Sequence record: MN445185.1
DNA length: 64,000 bases
Strand: one strand, 5' to 3'
Every line of letters starts with the position of its first letter. Positions within the stretch are counted from its first letter, which is position 1. Positions 77-55,585 of the stretch are shown here, one piece after another. The notes beneath the pieces are model-generated. The model had not been told where the DNA came from. It ran no database searches and was given only the letters and a program-made list of their open reading frames with translations. Position numbers and translations under genes: made by a program.

Positions 77-103
77 GGGGACTTCGGTCCCCTTTCTTTT
101 TTT
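77..103 (+). terminator. Rho-independent terminator
   Basis: GGGGAC-TTCG-GTCCCC followed by a T-tract. Confidence 0.9.
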
Positions 104-144
104 GCGTTTTAGGCCAGTGATATGACTACAACGAGGGACAGCTA

Positions 145-1647
145 ATGCAACAGTATTTTGAAATTCCATCGTTGGACAAGACCATGCGCAAAGCTGTGGT
201 CGACGGCGTCGTAGAACGTGTGCTAAACGAATCTGGTATTGAACGTGCCAGTGTTGTTTTCACGGATAGCTTCAACACCGCCCATCAGCCAGGCTCTACG
301 CTCGGCGATGAGACACCGGTGGACTATTCAGCACCGAACCGTGTCTACGTCGAAGTGGAAGAAGAACGTGATGAACGCGCACGCATTAACCGTCAAGTTG
401 GGTTAGCGGCAGAGATTCCATTCTTCCATAACCCCGAAGACCAAGTACGCGCCGCTCCTGTCCGCGTAATGTATAACGTGACTATCACGCTACGGCGTGT
501 CGGCCCATCGCGTGACGAATTGTTACGTTGGGCGAACCGCCTGGATTCACTTATCGACATGGGTCGCTATTCAACCATGACGGAATCCGAAGCGTACTAC
601 TTGATTCCAAAACCTGCGCTTAAGCTATTGAACGAATGCTATATCGCCGCAGGGACCCGTGTGCCGAAATACGATGACTTTAAAGATTATCTAAAGGCGC
701 ACTTCACACCCGACGTTTTCACCACAGGTAATGTTGCCGGTGGTCAGAATGTCTTAGCGGTACGCTACGCACCAACCCGTATCGAGACGGTTTACGATGT
801 TATCTCTCCTACCTGGGATAACGACGAAAACCGTTACGAGACCAGCTTCGTTATACGCTTCTCATATCAGCGACCCGAAGAGGTGGTGATTACCTACCCG
901 TACATTATCAACCAGACACCGTTGCCTGATGAATGGTGGCCTGAGATAGACCCACCGTTTGTGAGTAATGAAGAGGGTGTGCAACGTCACCAACAGCAAA
1001 AGAACCTCGACGGCACTTGGTGGATTAATGAATCTCGCCAGTTCTTACGCCTACCGTATCTGCTGTCACCGACAGAACAGTTTGAACGTACACACTCGCC
1101 GCTAAAAGCAAAGCTTCTGCATGTGTTCGGCACCGATGTAGCCTTCGGTGAAGAAAACATGATCGACCCTGAGGTTTGTAGTATCGATGATTTACCGTAT
1201 GTCTGGAATGCCGACGTGGTTCCTTATATCGAACACTGTCGCACGATAGACCCGACAGGTCAGACTGGCATTATCCGTATGGAATTGTTCGAGAATGGTC
1301 AAATCATTGAACCACGTTTCTACCATTGGGAAAACGGCGTCTTCTCGCTACGTAACCGTGAAGTTCATGTCGAGAAAGCGTACTACTTAACAGAGTCGGC
1401 AATACACGACTGGCGTAATATGGACTTATGGCCACTGCATCTTTATCCAAAAGCGGCAAAAGTGCTTATTGAGTGGTTATTCCCAGATTGGGATTGCCCG
1501 GATTGGTGGTGGGATAAACCTGTGTTACCACCAAGTGTGATTGATGAAATCACGAAGTTCTATCGCCGTGTCCTGTTGACGCAATTTAATACCACGATTA
1601 TAGCCATCAGAGGAGCCGATAATGCTCAAGGCGAACAAGAGGGGTGA
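145..1647 (+). CDS. Virion structural protein (phiKZ/SPN3US-like conserved block)
   Basis: 500-aa ORF with GAGG RBS and a TATG late-type element at 121; position in the structural block upstream of helicase/MCP. Confidence 0.6.
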   Translation: MQQYFEIPSLDKTMRKAVVDGVVERVLNESGIERASVVFTDSFNTAHQPGSTLGDETPVDYSAPNRVYVEVEEERDERARINRQVGLAAEIPFFHNPEDQVRAAPVRVMYNVTITLRRVGPSRDELLRWANRLDSLIDMGRYSTMTESEAYYLIPKPALKLLNECYIAAGTRVPKYDDFKDYLKAHFTPDVFTTGNVAGGQNVLAVRYAPTRIETVYDVISPTWDNDENRYETSFVIRFSYQRPEEVVITYPYIINQTPLPDEWWPEIDPPFVSNEEGVQRHQQQKNLDGTWWINESRQFLRLPYLLSPTEQFERTHSPLKAKLLHVFGTDVAFGEENMIDPEVCSIDDLPYVWNADVVPYIEHCRTIDPTGQTGIIRMELFENGQIIEPRFYHWENGVFSLRNREVHVEKAYYLTESAIHDWRNMDLWPLHLYPKAAKVLIEWLFPDWDCPDWWWDKPVLPPSVIDEITKFYRRVLLTQFNTTIIAIRGADNAQGEQEG

Positions 1648-2977
1648 TACTAAATTCGTTCCTGTTGAACCTGAAATTCCGATTATCAATAAACCGCAGG
1701 ACGGGGTGAAAGAAGCCAGCAACTTGGTAACGATTCCAACCCGCACCACGGTAACGGACTTCGACAGGATTCCGAAACAGTATCTCCTGCAATACAACGA
1801 AGGTTCTGAATGGCCGGTTGATTTTTATCACGCGTTGTCGGGTCGCAACGATCCGAAGACGATGTTCGATACTCAGAATGACAGCCCTACGCAACAGCTG
1901 CTTAAGATTGTTAATCTGTCATTACGTGTTAACGCACCGCTCGACCGTACGCAGGACGAACAACGTAAGACTTTCGAACTGACCGGGACGTCGACCCTGG
2001 TAGCATCGATTACACCGAACGAGGGTGACTTCTTTGTTGCGCCGATAGGCGACCATCGCCACGGTCTGTTTAACATCACTGCCGTTACCCGAATGTCGAA
2101 CAACAAAATTGCAACGTACCAGATACGTTACACGATGTTGTACGAGATTACACCGCAGATTGCAGAGACGATTCGTCTGTGCACTGTGAGAACGCTCCAT
2201 TACGTCCGTGAGCGCGCGTGGACCGGTGGTGATACCTTACTGACCCCCAACGAGTATCGTACGTTCCTGGAGCTGGGAGACCGCATTAAGGACATTGAGA
2301 CGACGTTTGTTCGCCGTTTCTACGATACCAGTTTAGAAACCCTCGCCTATCCACGTGACTGGAAACTCGACGGGTTAAAGGCGGGGGGTTATTACGACGT
2401 TTTCTTGGCGATGTTTGTGAAGGCTATTGGTCTTCGAACCGTTGGTAAAGATATCCGTATTTACCCGCACCCGCCGAAACCCGTGCAAGATATCGAAACG
2501 CTGTTCACGGTGTTGTTAAATCAACAGCCAGAACTGCTACCTTACGTCGAGAAAGAATGCAGCGCAGTTAACCCGCGCACGTTCAGAACGATGCAGACCC
2601 GCAACACTATTGCATGGTCACAGTTCAGTTCGACGCGTTACTTTACATCACAGATTCGTCAGTTGGCAACGTACGATGGGGAGTGGCCAGAGTTCGAAGC
2701 ATTCGAACCGGTTATGTTCCCTGAGTATCATGGCAACGCAGGCGAGGATATGGTGGCTTTTCTGCCGTTGACGTATAAACCCTACCTGTTAAGCGAAACG
2801 TTCTATAGCGGCTCGTACAGCTCGGTTCTGGAGCATTGTTTGTACCTGTATCTGAACAAACAACCAGTACCTAGTGAAGTGGCTGCGCGTTTAGCAGAAT
2901 TGGTGCTGGCTTTACCGAAGGACAGTCAGTTCTATTACGTCCCGATGGTCTACGTGATTTTGAAATACGCGAGGTAG
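1622..2977 (+). CDS. Virion structural protein
   Basis: 451-aa ORF overlapping the previous gene; same operon. Confidence 0.6.
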   Translation: MLKANKRGDTKFVPVEPEIPIINKPQDGVKEASNLVTIPTRTTVTDFDRIPKQYLLQYNEGSEWPVDFYHALSGRNDPKTMFDTQNDSPTQQLLKIVNLSLRVNAPLDRTQDEQRKTFELTGTSTLVASITPNEGDFFVAPIGDHRHGLFNITAVTRMSNNKIATYQIRYTMLYEITPQIAETIRLCTVRTLHYVRERAWTGGDTLLTPNEYRTFLELGDRIKDIETTFVRRFYDTSLETLAYPRDWKLDGLKAGGYYDVFLAMFVKAIGLRTVGKDIRIYPHPPKPVQDIETLFTVLLNQQPELLPYVEKECSAVNPRTFRTMQTRNTIAWSQFSSTRYFTSQIRQLATYDGEWPEFEAFEPVMFPEYHGNAGEDMVAFLPLTYKPYLLSETFYSGSYSSVLEHCLYLYLNKQPVPSEVAARLAELVLALPKDSQFYYVPMVYVILKYAR

Positions 2978-2979
2978 TA

Positions 2980-3519
2980 ATGTCGGAGAAGAAGCGCAGT
3001 GCAGCATTTATGCTGTTTAAAGCGTGGGTGTTCTTCCGGGTACCGGAATACGCAACCATCACAACCTACGCCAGTCAGGAACACGGATTGTTCTTGCCAG
3101 AAGACCCGAAGAAACGACAAGCGTTGTTACTGAACATGAAGCCTATCTATCTGCACCCCTCAGAAGCTGCCGAGTATTTAGCGACCGGTGGTGCGTTAGA
3201 TGTACACGACCCGCATGACGGGATTAAAGTGTACGGGTGGATTATGGAACACCTTGCGGACTGGCTGAACTATCTGGAGAACCCGACGCTGATTTACCGG
3301 GAAGTCCCTATCGAAGGGTTGCGTCAGTTCAATGTGCTGGCTTCGAAACTGTTTCCTGTGGCTAACCGCTACGGGTATTTCAAGAAACCCACTGCAACGA
3401 TGGCGGACTGTGTTCAGTCGTTATTTGGGCAGGTCCGCCTGGAGTCTAAACTCCACCGTTTTAATGATACGATTATGAAACGTATTGAGTACGCTTATAG
3501 AGCCCGAGGAGGTCGCTAA
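2980..3519 (+). CDS. Conserved jumbo-phage hypothetical protein
   Basis: 179-aa ORF, GAGG RBS, TAATG coupling to the next gene. Confidence 0.7.
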   Translation: MSEKKRSAAFMLFKAWVFFRVPEYATITTYASQEHGLFLPEDPKKRQALLLNMKPIYLHPSEAAEYLATGGALDVHDPHDGIKVYGWIMEHLADWLNYLENPTLIYREVPIEGLRQFNVLASKLFPVANRYGYFKKPTATMADCVQSLFGQVRLESKLHRFNDTIMKRIEYAYRARGGR

Positions 3520-4832
3520 TGTCGTTTGGTCGGTTACAACAGATGGCGAACGGTCACATCGCTAATGCTCGGGGGTTACCGGCTATCGACTACGGGATAT
3601 TCCTCACGGTACACGGTGCCCCAGTGACGGTGTTGAAGATGCTGTCTATCATTCACACCGGTCACTTTACGCGTGATATCTGTTTATTGACACATCTCAC
3701 CTTGGCTATACCCTACAGCCACATGCGAATGATCACGTCGTCCGCAGAAGGGGATTTGAAGGTAAAGCTGTTATTGCGTCGTGGACAGAAAATCGCGGGG
3801 GTCTTTAACTACCGCGGCATCGTGATAAATAACCGCGACCACAACGCGGAAACACCGACGATGTTCTTGAGTCAGTCTGATGAGAAATCTATCGCTTTGG
3901 TAACATTGGAGCTGATGGATGAGTCGATGTGGTTCCTGCGTAATCGTCAAGTGGGCGGCATCTACCACGAAACAGATGGGTTAACAGTGGCACGCTCGAT
4001 ACTGGCGGATACGTTGCCGGAAGGGGTGGCTGCAGAGGGGCAGTTGAAAGGGATTGAATACGATGAAGAAGAACAGCAGGCATATCGGGACATCGTTATA
4101 CCAGACTCCGAAGACTTCTTAAGCGTGTTTGATTATCTGCAGAACCATTACGGTGTTTACAGCAAAGGTATTGGGGTCTTCCAATACCTACAACGTTGGT
4201 ATCTGTATCGACCTTGGGACTCGTTGAAGTTTAATAACACAACGAAGCCTAAACTGGTCATTTATAACTTGCCTCGTGAACAGGCTGCTCACATTGACCG
4301 CACCACCGATATCGCGGGTAATGTTATCTATCTGATTTGTGGCGGCGACACCAGTAGTTTGGAATACCGTGACCAGACCGCGCTTAACCAGGGTACGGGT
4401 TACCGGGTAGGGTCTGTACGTGTGTTGGATGGGCGTAGTAGTTCATTTACGCCTGGCGACATCAGTATGACCACACCTGATAAATTTGTGGCACAGGCCG
4501 ACCCTGCTGCGTATCCAGGTGGTGTGGTTAACGCACCAATCGATCCTGATAAGCACTTTAGCGATACCGATAAGCCGCAGCGGTCTAAACTGGAGATGGG
4601 TCTGGGTACGATTGTGCAAACAACCTGGAACCGTTCAACGCACGGCATCCTATATCCTGGTATGCCAGTAAAATACGTTTTTGCCAACGAGTATGGGGTC
4701 TATACCCGCTACGGCACGTTGGTGGGGGAGGTGTTCCAGTCTGCTATCGACGGTCAAACGATGGCGTCCGGGCGCTATAACACCCAATCTCAACTGAGCC
4801 TTTGGCTCAAAGATGAAAAATTTACAGCTTAG
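3519..4832 (+). CDS. Virion protein, possibly baseplate hub (T4 gp27-like)
   Basis: 437-aa beta-rich ORF; FDYLQNHYGVYSKG segment and size resemble hub proteins (inference). Confidence 0.45.
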   Translation: MSFGRLQQMANGHIANARGLPAIDYGIFLTVHGAPVTVLKMLSIIHTGHFTRDICLLTHLTLAIPYSHMRMITSSAEGDLKVKLLLRRGQKIAGVFNYRGIVINNRDHNAETPTMFLSQSDEKSIALVTLELMDESMWFLRNRQVGGIYHETDGLTVARSILADTLPEGVAAEGQLKGIEYDEEEQQAYRDIVIPDSEDFLSVFDYLQNHYGVYSKGIGVFQYLQRWYLYRPWDSLKFNNTTKPKLVIYNLPREQAAHIDRTTDIAGNVIYLICGGDTSSLEYRDQTALNQGTGYRVGSVRVLDGRSSSFTPGDISMTTPDKFVAQADPAAYPGGVVNAPIDPDKHFSDTDKPQRSKLEMGLGTIVQTTWNRSTHGILYPGMPVKYVFANEYGVYTRYGTLVGEVFQSAIDGQTMASGRYNTQSQLSLWLKDEKFTA

Positions 4833-4844
4833 TCATCTAGTATG
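4822..4844 (+). promoter_or_regulatory. Bipartite TTAC-N15-TATG phage promoter candidate
   Basis: aaaaatTTAC-15 nt-TATG upstream of 4876; matches both the phiKZ middle (AAanntTAC) and late (TATG) motifs. Confidence 0.6.
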
Positions 4845-4875: not shown

Positions 4876-5673
4876 ATGAAAGCGATTCACACCTTTCGCA
4901 TGACCGGCCAAACTGTTCTCGACATTGATGCGTATGAAGCCGCTAACTTCACCAAACCGACCAAGCTCTGGGATCGCTTGGTTAAGGTACTGCCGCAAAG
5001 CGGTGAGGTGCAGTTGGATTTTGTCATGGCATCGACGTTGGATAAAACAGTGGCAGTTATTTATACTGCTGACGGTGTGCAGAGTAAGAAGGACCTGGCA
5101 ATCGAAGATAAAGGCGGGCTGGGTTATCACTTGTTCCTGCACTGCGTAACCACTGCACCGATTTCAGCTGCGCTGGCGGGACAGTACGGTTTCGCGAATG
5201 CGTATTTCCTGGCACAGAAACTCGCCGTGAATGTTATTCCGGGTGACGTGACCACTTACCCTGAATACGTACAGCGTATCCTGCCAGAGCACTTCGCTGC
5301 AGACGACTACGATTTCAACGTGTTCCGTTTCGCATTGATCGGCGAATCGCGCGATCCAGAATACACCGTTGGCTTGCGTGCCTGTCTGCGTCACTCCGTT
5401 ATCTCTTCGGATGAAGGGATGTCGAATAACGTGAACGAAGTGTTCCCGATGATGCAAGTCGGTCCGTATATCACTTTCAACTCGTACATTCCGTTCCCGG
5501 CACAGATTCTGCCGCCGCAGAACGATAACAGTGTACTGCCAATCGCCGACAAGTATTCACTGCGTGCGAGCGAAGCAGTTGAAGTGATTAACGATCGTCG
5601 CTTTACATTGTCAGTGACCAGCGGCATCAGTGAACCGGAAGTTGCGGTCTCTCAGAGCCTGGATTTGATGTAA
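4876..5673 (+). CDS. Probable virion structural protein
   Basis: 265-aa ORF, AAGGA RBS, own late-type promoter and terminator. Confidence 0.6.
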   Translation: MKAIHTFRMTGQTVLDIDAYEAANFTKPTKLWDRLVKVLPQSGEVQLDFVMASTLDKTVAVIYTADGVQSKKDLAIEDKGGLGYHLFLHCVTTAPISAALAGQYGFANAYFLAQKLAVNVIPGDVTTYPEYVQRILPEHFAADDYDFNVFRFALIGESRDPEYTVGLRACLRHSVISSDEGMSNNVNEVFPMMQVGPYITFNSYIPFPAQILPPQNDNSVLPIADKYSLRASEAVEVINDRRFTLSVTSGISEPEVAVSQSLDLM

Positions 5674-5839: not shown

Positions 5840-5915
5840 TTTCAGATATATATTACCTAGGTGATAGAAGACAATCTATCAACTCAATCGACTATTAATC
5901 TAAAGGAGTATTGCC
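5840..5915 (+). promoter_or_regulatory. Early promoter-hairpin-leader cassette, copy 1
   Basis: TTTCAGATATATATTACCTAGG contains the phiKZ-type early motif TATATTAC (5849-56); hairpin 5862-81; AATCGACTATTAATCTAAAGGAG leader. Confidence 0.8.
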
Positions 5916-12670: not shown

Positions 12671-12693
12671 AGATAGATATTATCTTAGGGAGA
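12671..12693 (+). promoter_or_regulatory. Early-type promoter, AGATAGATRTTATC class
   Basis: AGATAGATATTATCTTAGGGAGA; same motif at 12869, 33175, 41718, 50118. Confidence 0.7.
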
Positions 12694-12725: not shown

Positions 12726-12869
12726 ATGGAAGTCAATTTAGAGAGATCAAGACTAGTTGCACCGATGTTTGATGGGCGCGGTTTTATGGCGAACGGTCAC
12801 CACGTTTGATACCCTAAAGTTTTTTACGTTAAGGGCACTGGGTATGAACCCGTGCCCAAAGTAATCTGA
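12726..12869 (+). pseudogene. 47-codon ORF interrupted by an in-frame TGA (12807-09); pseudogene or readthrough
   Basis: AAGGAG RBS; MEVNLERSRLVAPMFDGRGFMANGHHV*YPKVFYVKGTGYEPVPKVI*. Confidence 0.45.
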
Positions 12870-12890
12870 GATAGATATTATCTACGTGAA
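12869..12890 (+). promoter_or_regulatory. Early-type promoter, AGATAGATRTTATC class
   Basis: AGATAGATATTATCTACGTGAA upstream of 12923 and the RNAP gene. Confidence 0.65.
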
Positions 12891-13938: not shown

Positions 13939-15717
13939 GTGTTTAAAGATGCGATTAGGAAGATTAAAGAGGCAGGCGAAATAGTGCCTTTTAATCGTGC
14001 AATTGCAGAAGGAGTTGGGTACACACAAGCTAAAGACGGGATACATGATCGTGTGGCAACCATTCTACGTCGTGAGTTGACGTATGATGAAATCGATAAC
14101 CCGAAATTACCAGAAGGGTTAACGGTATTAGGTTGTCGCCAAATGTCGCCGTTTGAAGCTTTTATCTTTAAGTTATCGAAGTCGGATAACAATTCACGAA
14201 ATAATCGTGGCCGGTCAATTATTAACATCTCATCCACTGATACGTATATGGTAATGGCCTCGTTCCGAGTTCCAGGCGATCCTCGCCCGGTGCAACGACC
14301 AATGAGCTTACCATTTATTCGTCGTGGCGGCTTAATGAACTACTACGGTACAACGTACCACGTAGCACCTGTAATCCACCAACCTGGTATTTGTCGTGAG
14401 CACGGTGGTATCTTTATTAACTTTGACTTCACCCGCAAGGTGTCTATCAAGTTCTGTAAGAAACCAACGAAGATTCTGGTGAATGGTCGCCCTGAGCAGC
14501 TGTTCTTGCCAGGTACATCGAATCTGTTTGTCTCAACCGGACAGATTGGACACGACACCGATGAGAAGCCGTTGATGTATTGGCTCTTCGGGCGCTACGG
14601 CTTTAAACAAGCTGTGAAGCGTTATGCGGGTGTTGATGTGGCGATTTGGCCAGCGATTAAAGTACGTGATGTGGACTTAACGAAGTATGTGGTGATTCAG
14701 TCCGGTGAGCCACAACTCGCGAAGACCATCCAGTACGTACTGTTGGTTAAACGTGAAGATATGCCTAACACCGATGCAGGGCGTTGGGATCAGAATGAAC
14801 ATCTGTTGCTGGTAGCGACTGCCGCATTCTTCAAAGCAGCGCACTACTACGCAGGTAAACAGAACAGTAAGAACGGTCGTGCACCAACACTGCCGGGGCT
14901 GTTTACACAGATTAACGAAATGGCAATGGACGAAGATATTGCGAACCTCAATTCTGCAGCCTCCTGGCGCGAAGTGTTGGGTCGTAGTATTCGCGGACTG
15001 AAGCCTTCGGATATCGAACTGAGTCGCAGTATGGACAGCCACTTCCAGGAATGTGAACGCTATGTCAACAGCACCTTCCGTGGTGAGCTGATGGCAAACG
15101 ATCCGTCCATCCCTGATGATTTGGATATGTTTGATTTCCTCTGGTACACCACGCAGCTGATGGTGCGTACTCGTCTTACCAAACAAGATGATATTCCGTC
15201 TATGTACGGAAAACGTCTCACGGTAACCGATTACTTACTGTTGGGCCAACGTGGCTTTACCACAACGATCTCGAAAATACGTTGGAAGCTGGGGCAGTTG
15301 GAACATCGGACTCCAGAGACAGCGGCGAAGTCTATTCGAGACGCACTGAACAAACAGATCGTGCTCAATCTGGTGATGCGCACCATTACGAGCAACGGCG
15401 GTATCAGTTTCTTCAATGCCTCTACAGAATCAATGGTATTGGCAGTGTCTACGCACGCCATCGGTCAAACCGAAACCGATGCTAAGCGTTCGAAGAAAGG
15501 AGGCAAGACCGTTAACTTGAACGACCGTACTAAGCACGCATCTGCGTCGCATCTGGAATGTGGTAACGTCTACTATATTCCTAAGTCGGCACCGTTTAAG
15601 GCAAACATCCTCAACCCGTACATGAAGACCAACCCAAGTTTGGTAATGATGCGGAACCCTAAACTGGACCCGTACATCAGACCGACCGAAGAAGACATTG
15701 CTAAAATCGGCCGCTAA
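13939..15717 (+). CDS. Non-virion RNA polymerase beta subunit, N-terminal part (phiKZ gp123-like)
   Basis: 592 aa; SLPFIRRGGLMNYYGTTYHVAPV and HASASHLECG resemble RNAP beta segments; synteny downstream of MCP. Confidence 0.8.
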   Translation: MFKDAIRKIKEAGEIVPFNRAIAEGVGYTQAKDGIHDRVATILRRELTYDEIDNPKLPEGLTVLGCRQMSPFEAFIFKLSKSDNNSRNNRGRSIINISSTDTYMVMASFRVPGDPRPVQRPMSLPFIRRGGLMNYYGTTYHVAPVIHQPGICREHGGIFINFDFTRKVSIKFCKKPTKILVNGRPEQLFLPGTSNLFVSTGQIGHDTDEKPLMYWLFGRYGFKQAVKRYAGVDVAIWPAIKVRDVDLTKYVVIQSGEPQLAKTIQYVLLVKREDMPNTDAGRWDQNEHLLLVATAAFFKAAHYYAGKQNSKNGRAPTLPGLFTQINEMAMDEDIANLNSAASWREVLGRSIRGLKPSDIELSRSMDSHFQECERYVNSTFRGELMANDPSIPDDLDMFDFLWYTTQLMVRTRLTKQDDIPSMYGKRLTVTDYLLLGQRGFTTTISKIRWKLGQLEHRTPETAAKSIRDALNKQIVLNLVMRTITSNGGISFFNASTESMVLAVSTHAIGQTETDAKRSKKGGKTVNLNDRTKHASASHLECGNVYYIPKSAPFKANILNPYMKTNPSLVMMRNPKLDPYIRPTEEDIAKIGR

Positions 15718-20906: not shown

Positions 20907-23090
20907 ATGCAGAGATTTAACATTTTTCGTGACCAGGCTATCCAGTTAGCGAAATCCCTGATTGTCAAATCAGAGAGCATCGCACAACAGATGAACCTGG
21001 CAATAACCAAAAACGGCGGTTTCGTTTCCGAGAACCGTGAGACGTGGCGGTATTACCTACACTTAGCAGGTAAACGACATGCAATCGACAAGCCGATATA
21101 CATTACGTCACTCGACACGCAAGAGCAGATAGAGTTAACGACGCAGAACCTCTCCCGTCATAAAAAGACCTCAAACGTATATCGTTCTAACCCGGAGTAT
21201 ATCGACGACTTAATCGCCGAGTATCCGGACTACGCAGTATATATTCGAGGCACTTTCAATCCGATTGATATTGCATACGCGATACGTGTCGATGACTGCT
21301 CAATTTTGTATTACGATCCTGCTTTAGTTGAACCGCAGGAGACGTCGTTAATTACACATATTGAGAACTTTATTCGTGCGGCACATGTGCGGTTCATGGC
21401 CGATGGCTGGAAAGTTCACAACGACTGTTTCGTACTGGCCTTTTACATGCAACAGTACCCGGTGTGGCCGGGGCTTATCATGTACATCCGCAAACGGTTA
21501 CAGTTTACGACCGAAACGCACTCCTACTACGTGACCGAGTTCTTGGCTTCACACCAAGAACTGCACGAGTTCATGCCGTACCTGACCCTCAAGCAGAAAT
21601 TCACACTGTATCGCAATATCCGTTACTGGGAACGTAACTCTGGTAAGGAAGAAATCTTTACCTGGATGATTGACACCCTGCTGACGGGTTGGGGTATGCC
21701 TGCTGTTGGATATAAGGTCGCCCAGCAGATTCACGACCCGACGACGGGCAGTGATGATGACCTGACACCACTCCCGATCGGCTACCAGTCATCGCTTAAC
21801 TATACTGAACGTGACTCGGGTCGTGACCTGGACATTGTTAGCACAACTGACATCATCCGGAAAGAAATCAATCTGGCGTACAATAACCCAGTGCACGAAC
21901 CTGACTATCAGGAAGACCTCGATCGGCGTTTGAGCTTGACGCAGTATCCGAACCTGCCAACGAAGTTAGTTGAGGTAACGGCGATTGACCCAGAGGCCAT
22001 CGAACGTTGGGAATTTATGCATGGCTTGTTCAACGAGTGGATGCATATCGTGGCACGTGGACAGTACAACATTTACCACGAAATTCTTAACCCAACGAAC
22101 GGGGATACGCTAAAGCTCACTTCAAAAGAGCTGCTGGCACTGTTCTTGTATGCGAGCTTCAAAGGTTATTCTGGCGTAGCACTGGATAAGATCCCGGTGT
22201 GGAACGTGTTTGGTGTGTTAATCAAACGCTGGGTTGGTTTTGATGAGATGGAGCAGTATCTGCCAAGCTCATGGCCCGGTCGTTTTAATGCGTTGATTAA
22301 CTATTACACGGACACGCATCATGAAGTTATCGGTAATTTGACGTCTGCAGATGAGTTGTACGATGAAATCAGCGAAATCATGGTGCAGAAGCGTCGTCGT
22401 TACCGTTACTCGTATAATCGACACAAGCTAGCCGACCGTGCTGCCGGCACAATGTTGTTTACCTACCACTACCGTGACTATAAGTGCGATCTTGACCTAC
22501 CTTACCGCGATTACGACGAGTTCTTCAAAACGTTTGGTTTTGATTACAAGTTAGTCTCCGCGGAAACCTGGCAGGACATCGCCACCGACGCTTTAAACGT
22601 GGCCACTAATCTGGAAACACGTGCGTCTGTCTCACAAGCTGAAATACAACGCGCGATGGTGCGGTTAATGACGAAACTCTCGTCGTATACTGTCCATTTT
22701 GCCGCACGTATGGGTTCTGACACCTACGATGTCACCGACCCAGTCATCCCGATTCTGGATGATATTCTCGCAGAGGCTGCCGATACAACAAATATCATTT
22801 ACCCTCTGACAGACGTGCAGCGTGTGAGCCGTAGTTCATTCATGACGACGGATAAGCCCATCCCTGTCGCTCCCGTGATAAAGGAAATGGCAATCCCGCA
22901 ACGTATTAAGTTGCGGATGAATGTCTACCCTGGTATCCGCGTGAAGGTCGAGCAGGATGTTGTGGTCGATATGGTACAGCCGCCTATTGATATTATCCGT
23001 GTGCGGACGTCATTTGAGGAGTGGACGCTTGCCGAGCGCGTGGCCGACCGTGACATGGATGGCTTCCGGTTAGACCAATTACCAAAGTGA
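20907..23090 (+). CDS. Virion structural protein, probable baseplate wedge (phiKZ gp128-like)
   Basis: 727 aa from ATG 20907; WRYYLHLAG and IRYWERNSGK segments recall this family; head-to-head with portal. Confidence 0.6.
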   Translation: MQRFNIFRDQAIQLAKSLIVKSESIAQQMNLAITKNGGFVSENRETWRYYLHLAGKRHAIDKPIYITSLDTQEQIELTTQNLSRHKKTSNVYRSNPEYIDDLIAEYPDYAVYIRGTFNPIDIAYAIRVDDCSILYYDPALVEPQETSLITHIENFIRAAHVRFMADGWKVHNDCFVLAFYMQQYPVWPGLIMYIRKRLQFTTETHSYYVTEFLASHQELHEFMPYLTLKQKFTLYRNIRYWERNSGKEEIFTWMIDTLLTGWGMPAVGYKVAQQIHDPTTGSDDDLTPLPIGYQSSLNYTERDSGRDLDIVSTTDIIRKEINLAYNNPVHEPDYQEDLDRRLSLTQYPNLPTKLVEVTAIDPEAIERWEFMHGLFNEWMHIVARGQYNIYHEILNPTNGDTLKLTSKELLALFLYASFKGYSGVALDKIPVWNVFGVLIKRWVGFDEMEQYLPSSWPGRFNALINYYTDTHHEVIGNLTSADELYDEISEIMVQKRRRYRYSYNRHKLADRAAGTMLFTYHYRDYKCDLDLPYRDYDEFFKTFGFDYKLVSAETWQDIATDALNVATNLETRASVSQAEIQRAMVRLMTKLSSYTVHFAARMGSDTYDVTDPVIPILDDILAEAADTTNIIYPLTDVQRVSRSSFMTTDKPIPVAPVIKEMAIPQRIKLRMNVYPGIRVKVEQDVVVDMVQPPIDIIRVRTSFEEWTLAERVADRDMDGFRLDQLPK

Positions 23091-23097
23091 GAGACTT

Positions 23098-23625
23098 ATG
23101 GGATACCGTATAGATTTATCAAAAACCCCGAAACAGATTCTGGTTGAGAGAATCAATTACGTTTTTAAGTTATCGTATAGTGAAAATAACTACGAGTTTA
23201 ACCCACGTGGGGTGTGGCCGTTAACCCAAGCAGAGCGACGCGCTAAAGGTGTGGAGTCTAAAGTTGCGGCGCGCTTTGTAAATGGGGTACACGGCACTCA
23301 AGAGTTTTACCTGACTCGTGCGGACTTAAACAAGTTACTTAAAGACGTAACGGTTGAAGTCCCGAAGGGTGCGGCAGAATGGAGCCATGAATTAGTTCCG
23401 TATATTGTCGATGAGCTGGGTCTCCAGCTTGACACCTACGATATCATGGTTGAACCGATTACCCCGGAAATGGAATCGTATGAGGCGCGCTTAATCCCGC
23501 ACCATCTATCTTTCAAAGGCACGATTGCGATTACTTTTGTTGACCCAACTCCCCGTAAGCTGGCGCAGCTGGTAACTAAACGGGCACTCGACGGGTTTCG
23601 CCCAGGAGAATTTTTAAATGGCTAA
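23098..23625 (+). CDS. Virion protein, distant member of the paralog family
   Basis: S..ILVERIN..F, FYLTRADL, ELGLQL...DI and terminal LVTKRALDGF motifs shared with the 55.6-63 kb array. Confidence 0.6.
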   Translation: MGYRIDLSKTPKQILVERINYVFKLSYSENNYEFNPRGVWPLTQAERRAKGVESKVAARFVNGVHGTQEFYLTRADLNKLLKDVTVEVPKGAAEWSHELVPYIVDELGLQLDTYDIMVEPITPEMESYEARLIPHHLSFKGTIAITFVDPTPRKLAQLVTKRALDGFRPGEFLNG

Positions 23626-25732: not shown

Positions 25733-25775
25733 AAGCCCTCTTCTCCTCCGGGGGAAGAGGCTTCTTATTTTTTTT
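25733..25775 (+). terminator. Rho-independent terminator
   Basis: CCTCTTCTCC-TCCG-GGGGAAGAGG followed by a T-tract. Confidence 0.85.
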
Positions 25776-25776: not shown

Positions 25777-25799
25777 TTACGTCTACGTAAATTACTGTG
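25777..25799 (+). promoter_or_regulatory. TTAC-N15-TGTG promoter candidate
   Basis: Exact spacing; directly after the terminator U-tract and before 25828. Confidence 0.55.
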
Positions 25800-27841: not shown

Positions 27842-27878
27842 GTATAGGGGCTTCGGCCCCTATACTGTTTATTATTTT
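27842..27878 (+). terminator. Rho-independent terminator
   Basis: GTATAGGGGC-TTCG-GCCCCTATAC followed by a T-rich tract. Confidence 0.85.
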
Positions 27879-27884
27879 CCTGTG
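27862..27884 (+). promoter_or_regulatory. ATAC-N15-TGTG promoter candidate
   Basis: Overlaps the terminator 3' arm; upstream of 27892. Confidence 0.45.
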
Positions 27885-28546: not shown

Positions 28547-28588
28547 CTACCCTCGCCCGTTTAGCGAGGGTAGGTATTTATTTTTTTC
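28547..28588 (+). terminator. Rho-independent terminator
   Basis: CTACCCTCGC-7 nt-GCGAGGGTAG followed by a T-tract. Confidence 0.85.
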
Positions 28589-28623
28589 TTACGAATCGTC
28601 CACTCCGTATAGGAGGTAAGTCC

Positions 28624-33174: not shown

Positions 33175-33197
33175 GGATAGATGTTATCTTAGGGAGA
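33175..33197 (+). promoter_or_regulatory. Early-type promoter, AGATAGATRTTATC class
   Basis: GGATAGATGTTATCTTAGGGAGA. Confidence 0.7.
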
Positions 33198-33291
33198 CGT
33201 GCAAAAATTACGTTTCATCCTTAGCATATGCTAGAAGCCGTTGTGAGTCGGTTAAAACTCACCAACTTAAACTTAAAAGCGAGTAAACAAA

Positions 33292-34062: not shown

Positions 34063-34095
34063 TAGGCACTCTTCGGAGTGCCTATTATTTTTTTT
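34063..34095 (+). terminator. Rho-independent terminator
   Basis: TAGGCACTC-TTCG-GAGTGCCTA followed by a T-tract. Confidence 0.9.
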
Positions 34096-34097: not shown

Positions 34098-34120
34098 TTA
34101 CGTATGCTCGCTATATTGTG
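34098..34120 (+). promoter_or_regulatory. TTAC-N15-TGTG promoter candidate
   Basis: Exact spacing after the terminator; upstream of tmk. Confidence 0.55.
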
Positions 34121-34783: not shown

Positions 34784-34788
34784 TTGTA

Positions 34789-34827
34789 CCCCTCTTACCT
34801 TCGGGTAAGAGGGTATTGTCTTTTTTT
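34789..34827 (+). terminator. Rho-independent terminator
   Basis: Same 26-nt hairpin as 7776-7801, followed by a T-tract. Confidence 0.85.
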
Positions 34828-34848
34828 ACAGATCAGAACAGTCTTATG
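34826..34848 (+). promoter_or_regulatory. TTAC-N15-TATG promoter candidate
   Basis: Exact spacing, stacked upstream of early cassette copy 2. Confidence 0.55.
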
Positions 34849-34871
34849 CTTTTTGCTTCCACTCCACTAAA

Positions 34872-34947
34872 TTTCAGATATATATTACTTAGGTGAGAGT
34901 TACTACTAAACTCTCTAATCGACTATTAATCTAAAAGGAGTATTCTA
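34872..34947 (+). promoter_or_regulatory. Early promoter-hairpin-leader cassette, copy 2
   Basis: TTTCAGATATATATTACTTAGG; hairpin GAGAGTT/AACTCTC 34895-34915; TAATCGACTATTAATCTAAAAGGAG. Confidence 0.8.
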
Positions 34948-35313
34948 ATGCGTTTTAAACATCAAACCGTTGTGTTGGCAAAGAAAGCGTTTTTGGTTCG
35001 TCTTTCTTACATTATTACTCGTGTCACTGCGAAGGACGTTACGCAGAAAGACATTGCGTTATTAGTAGGCTGCTCACCGTCACAAATATCTGCGATTAAA
35101 AATGAACGTGAGAAGGCCGTGACTATCGAAACATTGATGCGGGTTGCTGATACACTGCGCCTGAATTACGAAATCGTCTACCGTTCCATCAACGGCAAAT
35201 GCCGCCATAGCTTTAAAATTGAATCATGCATCGATTACATGAACAACTGTCCTATCCGGGTACGAGAAACAGGACTTAAAGTCATGGCACGTAAACCTTC
35301 TGCAGTAATGTAG
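34948..35313 (+). CDS. XRE/Cro-family helix-turn-helix transcriptional regulator
   Basis: VTQKDIALLVGCSPSQISAIKN...TIETLMRVADTL. Confidence 0.85.
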   Translation: MRFKHQTVVLAKKAFLVRLSYIITRVTAKDVTQKDIALLVGCSPSQISAIKNEREKAVTIETLMRVADTLRLNYEIVYRSINGKCRHSFKIESCIDYMNNCPIRVRETGLKVMARKPSAVM

Positions 35314-35324: not shown

Positions 35325-35711
35325 ATGAATTGGTTTGTAAATGGTATCACCCGTCGCGTGATGACGGAAGAGGATGATCGATGTAAACATCTTAAAGTGG
35401 GCTCTATAGCCCCGCGCTATACGGCAGAGTGCGACCCATGGGGCCGCGAAACGTATTACATGTGCGAAGACTGCTGGGAAAAACTGCAGGCTGCAATTGC
35501 GGCGGAAGAAGTGGTCTGCGACGACTGCAAAGGTACCTTCCCGAAACGGGATACCGTTGAGTGGAAATGGTACGACTTTGACCCCAGTCAAGGGGATAAA
35601 GAACTCTGTATCTGTAATAACTGTGTGTCGTTACCGGTACATTTAAACCGTGTAGAGAATGACCGTCGGGCATTTGAACACGACTTTCCAGAAGCAACTT
35701 TCTGGGATTAA
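35325..35711 (+). CDS. Cys-rich probable zinc-binding protein
   Basis: CKH, CEDC, CDDC and CICNNC motifs. Confidence 0.7.
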   Translation: MNWFVNGITRRVMTEEDDRCKHLKVGSIAPRYTAECDPWGRETYYMCEDCWEKLQAAIAAEEVVCDDCKGTFPKRDTVEWKWYDFDPSQGDKELCICNNCVSLPVHLNRVENDRRAFEHDFPEATFWD

Positions 35712-36243
35712 CTAGTGTAAACCTTAAGGAGTATATCATGGCGAAGGCCCCTAAAACTGTAGCAAAAGATTCAACGGCAAGCACCGCGACTAAATCTGCA
35801 AAAACGTCTACTACAGAATTTCCACGTTCACCTACCATTCCTAAACCGGATGTAATTGTACCAATCAGTGAACGTCTGAAAACGATTCACATCGAACGTG
35901 AATTTCCGATTGACCTTGGTCAGGAAATCGTTGCGGTTAATCTTGGTAGTGATGTCCGCTTTACTATCTACAAGGGATTAACTAGTGTAAACCTTAAGGA
36001 GTATATCATGGCGAAGGCCCCTAAAACTGTAGCAAAAGATTCAACGGCAAGCACCGCGACTAAATCTGCAAAAACGTCTACTACAGAATTTCCACGTTCA
36101 CCTACCATTCCTAAACCGGATGTAATTGTACCAATCAGTGAACGTCTGAAAACGATTCACATCGAACGTGAATTTCCGATTGACCTTGGTCAGGAAATCG
36201 TTGCGGTTAATCTTGGTAGTGATGTCCGCTTTACTATCTACAA
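35704..36243 (+). repeat. Perfect-looking 270-bp direct tandem duplication
   Basis: 35704-35973 equals 35974-36243 by inspection; includes RBS and start codon. Confidence 0.95.
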
Positions 36244-36664
36244 AGGCGCGCATCTGAACAACATGGTGCTAACCCGCGGTGATGAAGTTATCGGTCTGTC
36301 TCGTTACGACACGCAAATCGAAAACATCTATCCGGTGTTTGCAGTAGCGATGTTGCGTTTGTTCATGCAGGATAAAGCCGACCTTTGTGGTCAGCTTGCG
36401 GGTATGGCGGATCGTGTTGGTCATATTCTGCCGACGCTGGTGAAACTGTACCCAGTTACGATTGACGTGGCGTTTACTACTGTAGACAACAACCACGGTT
36501 ATATCGTGCTGACCAAAGACGGTAAAGTTATCGCTGGCAATCTGACTGATAACGAAGTGCAGAAACATATGGACAAATTTGCGTTCATGGTGAATCGCTT
36601 AGCGCACGTCAGTGTCAAACATTCCGAAACTTGGACGGCGCTTGCCTCCAAACCGGAACTGTAA
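35738..36664 (+). CDS. Hypothetical protein with duplicated N-terminal 90 codons (internal restart at 36008)
   Basis: In-frame duplication; the second AAGGAG-ATG gives a 218-aa form. Confidence 0.75.
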   Translation: MAKAPKTVAKDSTASTATKSAKTSTTEFPRSPTIPKPDVIVPISERLKTIHIEREFPIDLGQEIVAVNLGSDVRFTIYKGLTSVNLKEYIMAKAPKTVAKDSTASTATKSAKTSTTEFPRSPTIPKPDVIVPISERLKTIHIEREFPIDLGQEIVAVNLGSDVRFTIYKGAHLNNMVLTRGDEVIGLSRYDTQIENIYPVFAVAMLRLFMQDKADLCGQLAGMADRVGHILPTLVKLYPVTIDVAFTTVDNNHGYIVLTKDGKVIAGNLTDNEVQKHMDKFAFMVNRLAHVSVKHSETWTALASKPEL

Positions 36665-36667
36665 TCA

Positions 36668-36705
36668 TTAAGGGGTCTTCGGACCCCTTAATTTTTTGTC
36701 TTTTT
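36668..36705 (+). terminator. Rho-independent terminator
   Basis: TTAAGGGGTC-TTCG-GACCCCTTAA followed by a T-tract. Confidence 0.9.
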
Positions 36706-36726
36706 ACGCATTATCCTCATGTTGTG
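36704..36726 (+). promoter_or_regulatory. TTAC-N15-TGTG promoter candidate
   Basis: Exact spacing; upstream of the GNAT-dam operon. Confidence 0.55.
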
Positions 36727-41008: not shown

Positions 41009-41046
41009 ACCTCCTTGCCCATGGGTAAGGAGGTCCCTTTTTATTT
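41009..41046 (+). terminator. Rho-independent terminator
   Basis: ACCTCCTTGCC/GGTAAGGAGGT stem followed by a T-tract. Confidence 0.8.
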
Positions 41047-41067
41047 ACATCAGTCCACTAACTTATG
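41045..41067 (+). promoter_or_regulatory. TTAC-N15-TATG promoter candidate
   Basis: Exact spacing after the terminator; upstream of 41100. Confidence 0.55.
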
Positions 41068-41717: not shown

Positions 41718-41744
41718 TTTTCAGATAGATGTTATTTTACTGAA
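41718..41744 (+). promoter_or_regulatory. Early-type promoter, AGATAGATRTTAT class
   Basis: TTTTCAGATAGATGTTATTTTACTGAA. Confidence 0.65.
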
Positions 41745-50120: not shown

Positions 50121-50143
50121 CAGATAGATGTTATCTCAGTGAA
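50118..50143 (+). promoter_or_regulatory. Early-type promoter, AGATAGATRTTATC class
   Basis: TTTCAGATAGATGTTATCTCAGTGAA, followed by hairpin CTCTGA/TCAGAG 50145-70. Confidence 0.7.
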
Positions 50144-50199
50144 CCTCTGAAATTTACGTTTCAATCAGAGCTTATGTCATGTATTAAGGAGCACTTAAA

Positions 50200-50532
50200 A
50201 TGTCTAAAGTCTATCACATTGCGGTATTGCGTCAGGCAACTGACCTTGAAAGCGACCGTGAACTTCGAATGCAGGAAGCCATTCTGAGCACTGTTAAAGA
50301 ACTTAACCAAGCAAACAATTTCGATGCACGCTTCGAAGCGTTACCAGTAAGCCGCAGTGCTTTCTACGGCAGTCAAATACTGGCAACCCAGTATGCGATG
50401 GCTTTAAGTGACTTGCGCAATAACCCTAGCCCAGAGACCGCGGCGAAGATGAACAAACTGTCGCTATGGATGAATAACCTGGATGTCCCCGCAGCATCCA
50501 CTGTAAGCGGTTTGGGGGTGGTCAATGGGTAG
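50200..50532 (+). CDS. Hypothetical early protein
   Basis: 110 aa, AAGGAG RBS. Confidence 0.75.
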   Translation: MSKVYHIAVLRQATDLESDRELRMQEAILSTVKELNQANNFDARFEALPVSRSAFYGSQILATQYAMALSDLRNNPSPETAAKMNKLSLWMNNLDVPAASTVSGLGVVNG

Positions 50533-51406: not shown

Positions 51407-51416
51407 GGGGGACAGG

Positions 51417-52120: not shown

Positions 52121-52143
52121 TCGGCGGATAAGGGTGATTGTGA

Positions 52144-54532: not shown

Positions 54533-54604
54533 AAGGCGTTGAAGGACACTCTACTCCACATCAACTAGGATGACGCTTATCCCAAGGGTAGCGAATAAAG
54601 CAGT

Positions 54605-54640
54605 ACCCTACTCCTTCGGGAGTAGGGTTTCTTCTTTTTT
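54605..54640 (+). terminator. Rho-independent terminator
   Basis: ACCCTACTCC-TTCG-GGAGTAGGGT followed by a T-tract. Confidence 0.9.
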
Positions 54641-54661
54641 GCCTAGTCCGATTACAATTAT

Positions 54662-54738
54662 TTTCAGATATATATTACTTAGGTGAGAGTTAACAATTAA
54701 CTCTTATCTAATCGACCATTATCTTAAGGAGTTTTAAC
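54662..54738 (+). promoter_or_regulatory. Early promoter-hairpin-leader cassette, copy 3
   Basis: TTTCAGATATATATTACTTAGG; hairpin 54684-54706; TAATCGACCATTATCTTAAGGAG. Confidence 0.8.
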
Positions 54739-55185: not shown

Positions 55186-55246
55186 TAATAACCCGGCGGG
55201 CAAAGTCCCGCCAATTCACCCGCAATCTACAAAAAAGGAATATCCC

Positions 55247-55465
55247 ATGCGCAACCTGTTCTCCAAATCTGAAATCAAACCTGTTGTTGAAACCGCAGCC
55301 AAACGTAAGCCCGACATGATTGACCTGCTGCTGAAAATGTCTGCAGCAGAAGCCAAAGCTTTCATGAATACAATGAAAGACGACGAAAAAAAGATTGACA
55401 ATGTTGAAGTAACCTATGGTGTTAAAGACCGCCCAAAGAATAACGACCTTGTGTGGGTCTGTTAA
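55247..55465 (+). CDS. Hypothetical protein
   Basis: 72 aa, AAGGA RBS. Confidence 0.7.
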   Translation: MRNLFSKSEIKPVVETAAKRKPDMIDLLLKMSAAEAKAFMNTMKDDEKKIDNVEVTYGVKDRPKNNDLVWVC

Positions 55466-55494
55466 TCGACGATTGAGGATATAGTCGTGAAGAA

Positions 55495-55540
55495 AAGGGA
55501 GCTTCGGCTCCCCTTCTTTTTTTGTTTCCTTTTCTTTTTT
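55495..55540 (+). terminator. Rho-independent terminator
   Basis: GGGAGC-TTCG-GCTCCC followed by a long T-rich tract. Confidence 0.85.
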
Positions 55541-55562
55541 GTTTGCTCTTGTTCAGATTCTG

Positions 55563-55585
55563 GTACGCGCTACGCTTTTAATATG
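55563..55585 (+). promoter_or_regulatory. GTAC-N15-TATG late-type promoter candidate
   Basis: Upstream of the paralog array. Confidence 0.5.

Follow-up and report, generated by a model that had tools for sequence, protein, structure and literature searches.

Which RNA polymerase transcribes the middle genes of phiKZ-like jumbo phages is unsettled, and a two-part intergenic signal in an SPN3US-type giant phage bears on this question. The signal lies in a 64,000-nucleotide stretch (hereafter the window) covering positions 62001-126000 of Escherichia phage vB_EcoM_EC001 (Seoulvirus SPN3US, phiKZ-like; MN445185.1). A sequence-only reading had proposed that TAC, 15 nucleotides and T(A/G)TG form a single promoter, often fused to the preceding terminator, thereby uniting elements described in phiKZ as separate middle and late classes. 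We therefore asked whether the pattern is real, what it most resembles and which enzyme might read it.

We first tested whether the pattern exceeds chance. All eight exact sites on the original list are present, although their coordinates began one base early, at the T before TAC, and its three near-matches are as described. The total count is not significant: the bare pattern gives 19 matches on both strands against 16.5 +/- 4.5 in shuffled sequence, in line with a caveat already attached to the proposal. The signal is instead specific to spacer, strand and location. Within the window, TAC-N15-TRTG gives 10 intergenic plus-strand hits, against 0-1 at every other spacer from 8 to 23 and 0-1 on the minus strand (mean of the other spacers 0.67; Poisson P about 3e-9 by our arithmetic). 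Across the whole genome, with 13,753 nt of intergenic DNA, N15 gives 25 plus-strand and 2 minus-strand hits, against 0-3 at the other spacers on the plus strand and 0-5 on the minus strand (plus-strand mean of the others 1.67; P about 1e-20). A refined pattern, TTACR-N14-TRTG, gives 11 matches against 2.7 expected, all on the plus strand, and 0 of 100 shuffles reach 11. Lastly, an unbiased dyad scan of about 90,000 trinucleotide pairs ranked TAC-N16-ATG, ACG-N15-ATG and ACG-N14-TAT near the top, behind only terminator dyads and a second promoter-like box. The observation thus holds. The absence of an N15 peak over neighbouring spacers had been named beforehand as grounds for rejection, but the peak is present in the window, in the whole genome and in three related phages, SPAsTU, Asesino and Machina.

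Positions that were not used for selection are conserved as well. Among the 27 exact genome sites, T occurs at -23 in 20, T at -22 in 23 and G at -18 in 21, counting the final G of TRTG as +1, which gives the consensus wwwTTTACGt ... TRTGa. The upstream box spans -26 to -17 relative to this presumed start, whereas positions -16 to -4 carry at most 0.34 bits each. T, T and G at -3, -1 and +1 are fixed by construction of the search pattern, and -2 is A in 17 sites and G in 10. Orthologous sites persist in five other genera (SPAsTU, Asesino, Machina, Wellington and CR5), where both boxes are kept while the spacer drifts. Spacer identity is only 0.17-0.43, but the A/G choice at -2 is identical in all 7 ortholog groups and identity at +2 is 0.86.

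Scoring with a position weight matrix (PWM; training median 21 bits, listing cutoff 9 bits) and comparing relatives led us to revise the list of sites, leaving eleven supported sites in the window (Table 1). Two of the eight exact sites (27862 and 55563) and the N14 near-match (23079) look like chance, three exact sites had been missed (12825, 33209 and 50155), and the near-matches at 102 and 28589 are variants conserved with N15 spacing in other genera. The statement that most sites begin in the preceding terminator holds for 6 of the 11 supported window sites but for only 12 of 28 genome-wide.

Table 1. Promoter-like sites, rejected matches and the putative reader gene in the window (all on the plus strand; scores are PWM scores).
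Position	Feature	Context	Score	Comparison with relatives and other support	Sequence-only reading
103..124	tttttTGCg-N-TATGac, TGC variant of the upstream box	21 nt before ATG at 145; abuts terminator hairpin 77-92	18.9	Wellington ortholog also TGC-N15-TATG	near-match
4823..4844	aaaattTACa-N-TATGaccc	32 nt before ATG at 4876; overlaps last codons of upstream gene	17.4	CR5 TAC-N15-TATG; Wellington AAC-N15-TATG	exact
12825..12846	gtttttTACg-N-TATGaacc	332-nt gap after the major capsid gene; early-type AT-box follows at 12869-12883; upstream of the operon holding the non-virion polymerase beta-like gene	21.1	Same TAC-N15-TATG plus AT-box arrangement in Wellington and CR5	missed
25778..25799	ttttatTACg-N-TGTGt	29 nt before ATG at 25828; fused to T-tract of terminator 25737-25760	20.3	SPAsTU, Asesino and Machina orthologs all TGTG	exact
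28590..28611	cTTACg-N15-TATA, degenerate but conserved variant	Runs into the ribosome-binding site (TATAGGAGG) of the DprA-like gene at 28624; follows terminator 28547-28573	below 9 because +1 is A	SPAsTU TGC-N15-TATA; Wellington TGC-N15-TATA; Asesino TCC-N15-TATG	near-match
33209..33230	aaaaatTACg-N-TATGc	62 nt before ATG at 33292; AT-box variant (GGATAGATGTTATCT) just upstream	24.4	Orthologs in Asesino and Machina	missed
34099..34120	tttcttTACg-N-TGTGac	40 nt before thymidylate kinase ATG at 34160; fused to terminator 34063-34084	24.3	Orthologs in three genera, all TGTG, diverged spacers	exact
34827..34848	ttttttTACa-N-TATGc	100 nt before HTH regulator gene at 34948; fused to terminator 34790-34813; AT-box follows at 34876-34890	18.7	Orthologs in SPAsTU and Machina; absent in Asesino	exact
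36705..36726	tcttttTACg-N-TGTGacagc	28 nt before ATG at 36754 (acyltransferase, then Dam methylase); fused to terminator 36667-36692	22.0	Orthologs in three genera, all TGTG	exact
41046..41067	tttattTACa-N-TATGtgaaa	33 nt before ATG at 41100; fused to terminator 41009-41034	22.9	Orthologs in three genera, all TATGtgaaa or TATGtcaaa	exact
50155..50176	gaaattTACg-N-TATGtc	24 nt before ATG at 50200; AT-box immediately upstream at 50122-50136	23.2	Orthologs in SPAsTU and Asesino with the same AT-box-then-TAC order	missed
27863..27884	TAC-N15-TGTG, probably chance	TAC inside terminator stem 27842-27865; lacks TT and G flanks	below 9	No N15 match in SPAsTU, Asesino or Machina orthologous gaps	exact
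55564..55585	ctggTACg-N-TATGc, uncertain standing	Lacks T/A-rich flank; inside a doubtful annotated 44-codon ORF (55487-55621)	below 9	No counterpart in the Asesino and Machina gaps examined	exact
23080..23100	N14 match, not a member	Its TATG contains the ATG start codon of gene 23098-23625		N14 shows no enrichment	near-match
13939..15717	Gene for the homologue of phiKZ GP123, non-virion polymerase beta-like subunit	Presumed reader of the TRTG box		Matches PDB chain 7ogp_E (PHIKZ123), E = 3e-20

The placement of the sites fits a phage promoter. All supported sites, and all 27 exact genome sites, point toward the next gene, and the final G lies mostly 21-100 nt before a start codon, in most cases 24-40 nt. 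None of the 28 first downstream genes is annotated as a virion protein; they include thymidylate kinase, an acyltransferase followed by a Dam methylase, an SMC-like protein, a nuclease and many small ORFs. A different, AT-rich box fills the early-promoter role. This motif, (C/G)AGATAnATATTAyCTnnGTGA, occurs in 8 copies in the window and matches the phiKZ early consensus CAGTATATTACAnnnGTGA, a highly conserved AT-rich box of about 10 nt centred near -10 and used by the virion polymerase. Both motifs are phage-specific, intergenic and co-oriented with genes, and both contain a TTAC and a TG(A) start context, but in the early box TAC lies about 4 nt, not 15 nt, from the GTG, and the two-part sites lack the conserved AT-rich box near -10.

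We next compared the motif with the promoters of phiKZ. It is closest to the middle promoter, AAanTTACc about 22-24 nt upstream of the start, as at P78M, P62M and the second start site of gp54. In both phages a TAC-containing box lies at the same distance from the start, which, like the timing, is inferred here and measured in phiKZ, and both kinds of site occur before non-structural genes and sometimes in tandem with an early promoter. The A/T-rich lead-in is shared only in part: positions -26 to -24 are A or T here, but only the sites lacking a terminator have an A-rich lead-in as in phiKZ, reading aaaat or aaaatt before TAC, whereas terminator-fused sites read TTTTT. The premise that phiKZ keeps the two elements in separate classes proved only partly right. 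Yakunina 2015 (PMC4666361) already noted that P62M and P78M carry a correctly placed TATG, and P78M reads AAAATTAC-N15-TATG, the spacing found here. In our scan of phiKZ, A-rich TAC boxes are followed by TATG at N14 in 14 cases (10 non-coding), against 0-4 at every other spacer. The dominant phiKZ spacing is N14, not N15. The phages differ further in that the box is TTTACG with G at -18 here but TACT or TACC in phiKZ, that -2 may be G, and that about 40% of sites here (12 of 28 genome-wide) use a terminator T-tract as the lead-in. In the papers we consulted, the phiKZ class is described by its upstream box alone.

The start-site box, in turn, matches, apart from the G allowed at -2, that of phiKZ late promoters such as P119L, and is placed so that its G would be +1; in those promoters TATG has G as +1 and is read by the non-virion polymerase through the GP123 beta-lobe pocket, which binds non-template TATG from -3 to +1 (PMC12809450). 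Late promoters have no conserved upstream element and precede virion and lysis genes, whereas here the upstream box is conserved, is obligatory for any statistical signal and precedes genes not annotated as structural. TATG alone is not enriched in intergenic DNA (69 observed against 68.6 expected), and a shared late initiator class could therefore not be shown. In phiKZ, A is needed at -2 and every single substitution in TATG sharply reduced transcription (PMC4666361), which sits uneasily with the 10 of 27 sites that have G. In a six-genus alignment of the GP123 homologue, F151 and H331 are invariant, S330, S402 and Q466 are kept, Y406 and K158 are conservatively replaced by W and R, while the other seven of the 14 named pocket residues differ. 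A looser parallel is the T4 MotA-dependent middle promoter, which joins a MotA box near -30 to a -10 element. The outline is alike, a core recognition element plus a fixed-distance upstream box that needs an extra phage factor, but T4 uses host polymerase with sigma-70 remodelled by AsiA; here polymerase and any factor would be phage-encoded, the core element sits at the start site rather than at -10, and there is no sequence relation.

Together, these results support the sequence-only interpretation of a bipartite promoter, with the qualifications given here. With moderate confidence, we favour the view that these are promoters for the phage's own transcription machinery, most likely the SPN3US-group counterpart of the phiKZ middle promoter. 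In this view, the GP123 homologue of the non-virion polymerase would read the TRTG box, and RNA would start at the final G. The upstream box lies where the sigma-like GP68 subunit touches DNA in the phiKZ structure (-17 to -24; PMC12809450), and it would be read by the GP68 homologue or by a still unknown middle-stage factor that contacts the polymerase, a contact that would explain the rigid 15-bp spacing. About half the sites sit directly on the T-tract of the preceding intrinsic terminator, giving compact stop-start cassettes, and the tandem early-type boxes at several genes would extend expression from the early into the middle phase. Consistent with this model, middle transcription has been argued to occur inside the phage nucleus, and so to be performed by the non-virion enzyme plus an unknown factor (PMC10612078). 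However, purified five-subunit phiKZ non-virion polymerase did not transcribe P62M or P78M, the two middle promoters tested, despite their TATG, and grafting AAAATTACC into a late promoter lowered transcription 3-fold (PMC4666361). The upstream box is therefore not a simple activator for the core holoenzyme, and an extra factor is probably needed. Early-type boxes also end in GTGA, so a TG start context alone does not tell the two phage polymerases apart. Our analysis establishes the motif, its spacing, its strand and position bias, its conservation and the presence of the GP123 homologue; the start site, the timing class, the polymerase and the protein that reads each box are inferred, since the literature searched yielded no 5'-end or time-course data for SPN3US-group phages.

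The alternative that survives best, though we consider it unlikely, is a promoter read by the virion polymerase, either modified or as a second early class. Yakunina 2015 listed a modified virion polymerase as one scenario for middle transcription, early-type boxes also start in a (G/T)TGA context, and several sites lie at the left end of the genome among small, early-looking genes. Against this, the virion enzyme is excluded from the phage nucleus, where middle transcripts appear to be made (PMC10612078), the AT-rich -10-type box is absent from these sites, and the start box equals the one bound by the non-virion GP123 pocket. Similarly unlikely is that the motif is not itself a promoter but a binding site for a phage regulator, for example the Xre-type HTH protein encoded at 34948-35313 behind one of the sites, or an RNA processing signal that creates new 5' ends from read-through transcripts. 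Processing was raised for phiKZ middle transcripts (PMC10612078), and the phiKZ upstream box lowers transcription in vitro. Yet the element is asymmetric, always co-oriented with the next gene and at a typical leader distance from the start codon. At 12 of 28 sites the upstream box lies just past a terminator T-tract, so most upstream RNA would end before the box and could not carry it, and two rigidly spaced boxes with a free spacer are more typical of protein-DNA recognition than of a nuclease site.

Host sigma-70 promoters with TTTACG as the -35 element are very unlikely. TTTACG matches TTGACA at 4 of 6 positions and sites follow terminators, as host-type promoters often do, but a -10 hexamer 16-18 bp downstream would fall at about -1 to +7 (hexamer start -1 to +2), where no TATAAT-like sequence is conserved. 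None of the sites is among the 20 sigma-70-like hits in 24-43 kb, a count itself no higher than in shuffles, and phiKZ infection does not depend on host polymerase (PMC4666361). A by-product of base composition, with terminator T-tracts plus chance TAC and TRTG, would fit the unenriched bare pattern and the two chance-like exact sites, but it is contradicted by the single-spacer peak, by spacing conserved across genera with divergent spacers and by sites without any terminator.

More tentatively, and somewhat less likely than not, the rigid coupling of a TAC box to a TATG-type start box may be the general design of middle promoters in nucleus-forming jumbo phages, at N15 in the SPN3US group across six genera and at N14 in phiKZ itself. 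If so, middle genes are transcribed by the non-virion polymerase using the same GP123 start-site pocket as late genes. Class choice would then be made by a box-reading factor, or by the sigma-like GP68, positioned one and a half helical turns upstream, which would also explain how a four-base start signal gains specificity.

We examined positions 62001-126000 of Escherichia phage vB_EcoM_EC001 (MN445185.1; 100% identity), which belongs to the species Seoulvirus SPN3US, a phiKZ-like nucleus-forming jumbo phage. The window has a GC content of 48% and no N runs, nearly all of its genes lie on the plus strand, and by the record's annotation it holds 3,315 nt of intergenic DNA. A search against Rfam found no family in it. 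The sequence-only reading had proposed a two-part TAC-N15-T(A/G)TG promoter at eleven positions, and all eleven hold the sequences it described. As that reading had cautioned, the total count is uninformative, with 19 matches on both strands against 16.5 +/- 4.5 in shuffled sequences. The signal instead lies in spacer, strand and location. Scanning TAC-N(k)-TRTG yielded 10 intergenic plus-strand hits in the window at k=15 and 0-1 at every other k from 8 to 23, with 0-1 on the minus strand. We then repeated the tests on the whole genome (13,753 nt intergenic), where 25 plus-strand hits at k=15 compare with 0-3 at other spacers, and the 2 minus-strand hits at k=15 both precede minus-strand genes. 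The observation was therefore confirmed.

Additional analyses defined the full element. The slightly longer pattern TTACR-N14-TRTG occurs 11 times against 2.7 expected, always on the plus strand, and 0 of 100 shuffles reach 11. A random-seed EM motif search of upstream regions (40 seeds, width 27) recovered the ribosome-binding site, an AT-rich box and terminators, but not this motif. In contrast, a search over about 90,000 trinucleotide dyads with spacers of 4-25, run without prior assumptions, ranked TAC-N16-ATG (17 against 2.8), ACG-N15-ATG, ACG-N14-TAT and ACG-N14-TGT among the top, with only terminator dyads and dyads of a second box scoring higher. Positions that were not used for selection are also conserved, namely T at -23 in 20/27 sites, T at -22 in 23/27, G at -18 in 21/27, and A or T at -26 to -24. 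The full element is therefore wwwTTTACGt, a free spacer, then T(A/G)TG, often followed by A.

We evaluated individual sites with a weight matrix (listing cutoff 9, training median 21) and by inspecting orthologous regions of related phages. Nine sites are firm, three of which the sequence-only reading had missed, and two variants are supported by conservation. Two of its exact matches scored below the cutoff, and its N14 near match is explained by a start codon. Every supported site points toward the next gene, with the final G lying 21-100 nt before the start codon in the window and 24-40 nt before it in most genome sites. A hairpin plus T-tract ends just before TAC at 6 of the 11 supported window sites and at 12 of 28 sites genome-wide, while the remaining sites have an A-rich lead-in such as aaaatTTAC. 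The claim that sites are often fused to terminators is thus fair, but the claim that most are is not.

Positions of promoter-like sites and neighbouring features (window coordinates unless stated)
Position	Feature	Observation
103	TAC-N15-TRTG variant (TGC for TAC)	Weight-matrix score 18.9; Wellington ortholog also TGC-N15-TATG
4448	Intragenic match	Weight-matrix score 16.6; no match in Wellington; treated as chance
4823	TAC-N15-TRTG site	Firm
12825	TAC-N15-TRTG site	Firm; missed by the sequence-only reading; in tandem with the AT-rich box at 12869
23079	N14 near match	Uses the start codon of the next gene
25778	TAC-N15-TRTG site	Firm
27863	Exact match	Below the cutoff of 9; not conserved; TAC lies inside the terminator stem
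28590	TAC-N15-TRTG variant (TATA for TATG)	Runs into the ribosome-binding site; N15 spacing kept in SPAsTU and Wellington (both TGC...TATA) and in Asesino (TCC...TATG)
33209	TAC-N15-TRTG site	Firm; missed by the sequence-only reading; in tandem with the AT-rich box at 33187
34099	TAC-N15-TRTG site	Firm
34827	TAC-N15-TRTG site	Firm; in tandem with the AT-rich box at 34876
36705	TAC-N15-TRTG site	Firm
41046	TAC-N15-TRTG site	Firm
50155	TAC-N15-TRTG site	Firm; missed by the sequence-only reading; in tandem with the AT-rich box at 50122
55564	Exact match	Below the cutoff of 9; no counterpart in the two relatives examined
25799, 34120, 36726	TGTG	Choice fixed per gene across four genera
33230, 34848, 41067, 50176	TATG	Choice fixed per gene across four genera
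5844-5858	AT-rich box	
12671-12685	AT-rich box	
12869-12883	AT-rich box	
33187-33203	AT-rich box	
34876-34890	AT-rich box	
41723-41737	AT-rich box	
50122-50136	AT-rich box	
54666-54680	AT-rich box	
5886-5897, 34917-34928, 54710-54721	Conserved leader, AATCGACYATTA followed by TCTAAAGGAGTATT	Lies between AT-box promoters and start codons; 3 matches against 0.02 expected; also in Asesino, SPAsTU and Machina
12726-12809	Unannotated 27-codon ORF (MEVNLERSRLVAPMFDGRGFMANGHHV)	Good ribosome-binding site; directly behind the first AT-box in the 332-nt gap after the major capsid gene
13939-15717	Homologue of phiKZ GP123, the beta-like subunit of the non-virion RNA polymerase	Annotated as 'hypothetical protein' in EC001 and as 'polymerase' in relatives; E = 3e-20 to the solved chain
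34787-34895	Non-coding stretch (terminator, TAC-N15-TATG, AT-box) before the HTH regulator gene	About 75% identical in distant Erwinia phages (Machina, Huxley, Parshik), where flanking genes no longer align at the DNA level
34948-35313	Xre/Cro-type HTH protein	Pfam HTH_3, E = 2e-7
35704-35973 and 35974-36243	Perfect 270-nt tandem duplication	100% identity, 90 codons; covers the ribosome-binding site and start of CDS 35738-36664
55487-55621	Annotated 44-codon CDS	Runs through an intrinsic terminator hairpin and a long T-rich tract; probably not a gene
45470, 114922, 265939-273475 minus strand (phiKZ, NC_004629.1)	Examples of A-rich TAC(T) boxes followed by TATG(ta)	Fixed N14 spacing

We next asked whether the element is conserved. 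Syntenic 40-kb regions of Salmonella phage SPAsTU, Erwinia phage Asesino (Erskinevirus) and Erwinia phage Machina (Machinavirus) share only about 65-70% DNA identity with the window in this region, yet each shows the same N15-only peak. In seven ortholog groups, the spacer positions -17 to -11 show 0.17-0.40 pairwise identity, close to random, whereas -22 shows 0.86, -23 shows 0.74 and +2 shows 0.86. The A/G at -2, which the search did not fix, is identical in all members of all seven groups. That the choice between TGTG and TATG is fixed per gene suggests two functional grades or sub-classes of the promoter. Wellington and CR5, with 58-64% identity in the polymerase subunit, also keep orthologous sites. 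Goslar and a Vibrio relative show no clear signal in the 35-42 kb examined of each, although the Vibrio phage keeps TTTTTTTACG after the capsid gene, but with TATG at N9. Separately, SPN3US and most other relatives align across the 9 kb surrounding the 270-nt tandem duplication in three pieces with 91% or less coverage, and the break may or may not fall there; the repeat is either a very recent duplication or an assembly artefact.

Intergenic DNA also holds a second, near-palindromic AT-rich box, (C/G)AGATAnATATTAyCTnnGTGA. A strict pattern finds 18 copies in the genome and 7 in the window, plus one GGATAGATG variant. This box aligns with the one we found before phiKZ early genes, TTAAACAGTATATTACAnnnGTGA, fits the published rule that early promoters of these phages are a conserved AT-rich box near -10 (PMC7598289), and precedes the polymerase-subunit genes outside the window. 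It is probably the virion-polymerase early promoter of this phage group, though its palindromic core (AGATA-n-TATCT) could also be an operator for a dimeric regulator. The conserved leader that follows AT-box promoters may be a translation or stability element of early mRNAs. The TAC-N15-TRTG element is therefore not the early class. The two boxes occur in tandem, in either order, at four places in the window, and phiKZ gp54 likewise has both an early and a middle start (PMC8244752).

Comparison with phiKZ revealed that the two-box design is shared. Published descriptions give the phiKZ middle motif as AAanTTACc about 24 nt upstream (PMC4666361) or as a TACT motif centred 22 nt upstream after an A-rich run (PMC8244752), and the late motif as TATG with G as +1. 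The phiKZ middle promoters P62M and P78M carry a correctly placed TATG but were nevertheless not transcribed by the purified non-virion enzyme, and grafting AAAATTACC into a late promoter lowered activity 3-fold (PMC4666361). In the genome sequence, P78M reads AAAATTAC-N15-TATG. A bare TAC/TRTG scan of the first half of phiKZ showed no peak; one appeared only with the whole genome and an A-rich flank requirement. Over the complete genome, TAC preceded by at least 5 A in 7 nt is followed by TATG at N14 in 14 cases, 10 of them non-coding, whereas every other spacer gives 0-4 cases, with 0-1 non-coding. These sites include the one before gp54 and a cluster in the tRNA region at 265-274 kb, where middle starts were reported (PMC8244752). 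The middle-promoter box and the late start box are therefore coupled in the model phage too, a coupling not spelled out in the papers we could read. The SPN3US group differs in spacing (15 against 14), in box sequence (TTTACG), in tolerance of G at -2, and in frequent use of terminator T-tracts as the lead-in.

The phiKZ non-virion polymerase binds non-template TATG (-3 to +1) in a pocket of GP123, and its sigma-like GP68 touches the duplex backbone at -17 to -24 (PMC12809450), exactly where the TTTACG box lies here relative to the presumed start. Because pairwise mapping of pocket residues was unreliable, we compared the GP123 homologue encoded in the window across six genera in a six-sequence alignment. 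F151, which stacks on G+1, and H331, which stacks on T-3/A-2, are invariant. S330, S402 and Q466 are kept, Y406 becomes W and K158 becomes R, whereas H185, N186, K190, N398, Y399, S144 and S334 differ. We infer that the changes near -2 and -1 could underlie acceptance of G at -2. A 2023 localization study argues that middle transcripts are made inside the phage nucleus, hence by the non-virion enzyme with an unidentified factor (PMC10612078).

With moderate confidence, we favour a non-virion polymerase promoter that needs a box-reading partner and starts at the final G, and we are highly confident that this is a real phage promoter class of some kind. The motif and its conservation follow directly from the sequence comparisons, but the start site, the timing, the enzyme and any factor are inferred, and our literature searches found no promoter or start-site data for SPN3US-group phages. 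The localization study mentions RNA processing as the alternative (PMC10612078). The terminator-fused sites argue against it, because the upstream box would lie beyond the end of most upstream transcripts. We also looked for a TATG-only late class, for which candidates such as agTATGAcc lie before tail-sheath and other structural genes. However, TATG is not enriched in intergenic DNA (69 against 68.6 expected) and has no strand bias once TAC-linked sites are removed, so we make no claim for such a class in this genome. A sigma-70 reading was rejected on a scan of 24-43 kb, in which none of the sites is among the 20 sigma-70-like hits.

The interpretation offered by the sequence-only reading is thus supported at the sequence and comparative level. 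The element is best regarded as the SPN3US-group version of the phiKZ middle promoter, with an obligatory, rigidly spaced start box. It provides a usable rule for annotating transcription units in SPN3US-group genomes, for which we found no promoter map, and the compact terminator-promoter cassettes could serve phage engineering. Which enzyme reads middle promoters in phiKZ-like phages, and how the early-middle-late switch works, was stated as unknown in 2023 (PMC10612078), and a 2026 jumbo-phage review does not address middle promoters (PMC13282480). A middle-type box locked at a fixed distance to the start box of the non-virion polymerase, conserved across six genera and visible in phiKZ too, makes the question of who reads middle promoters directly testable.
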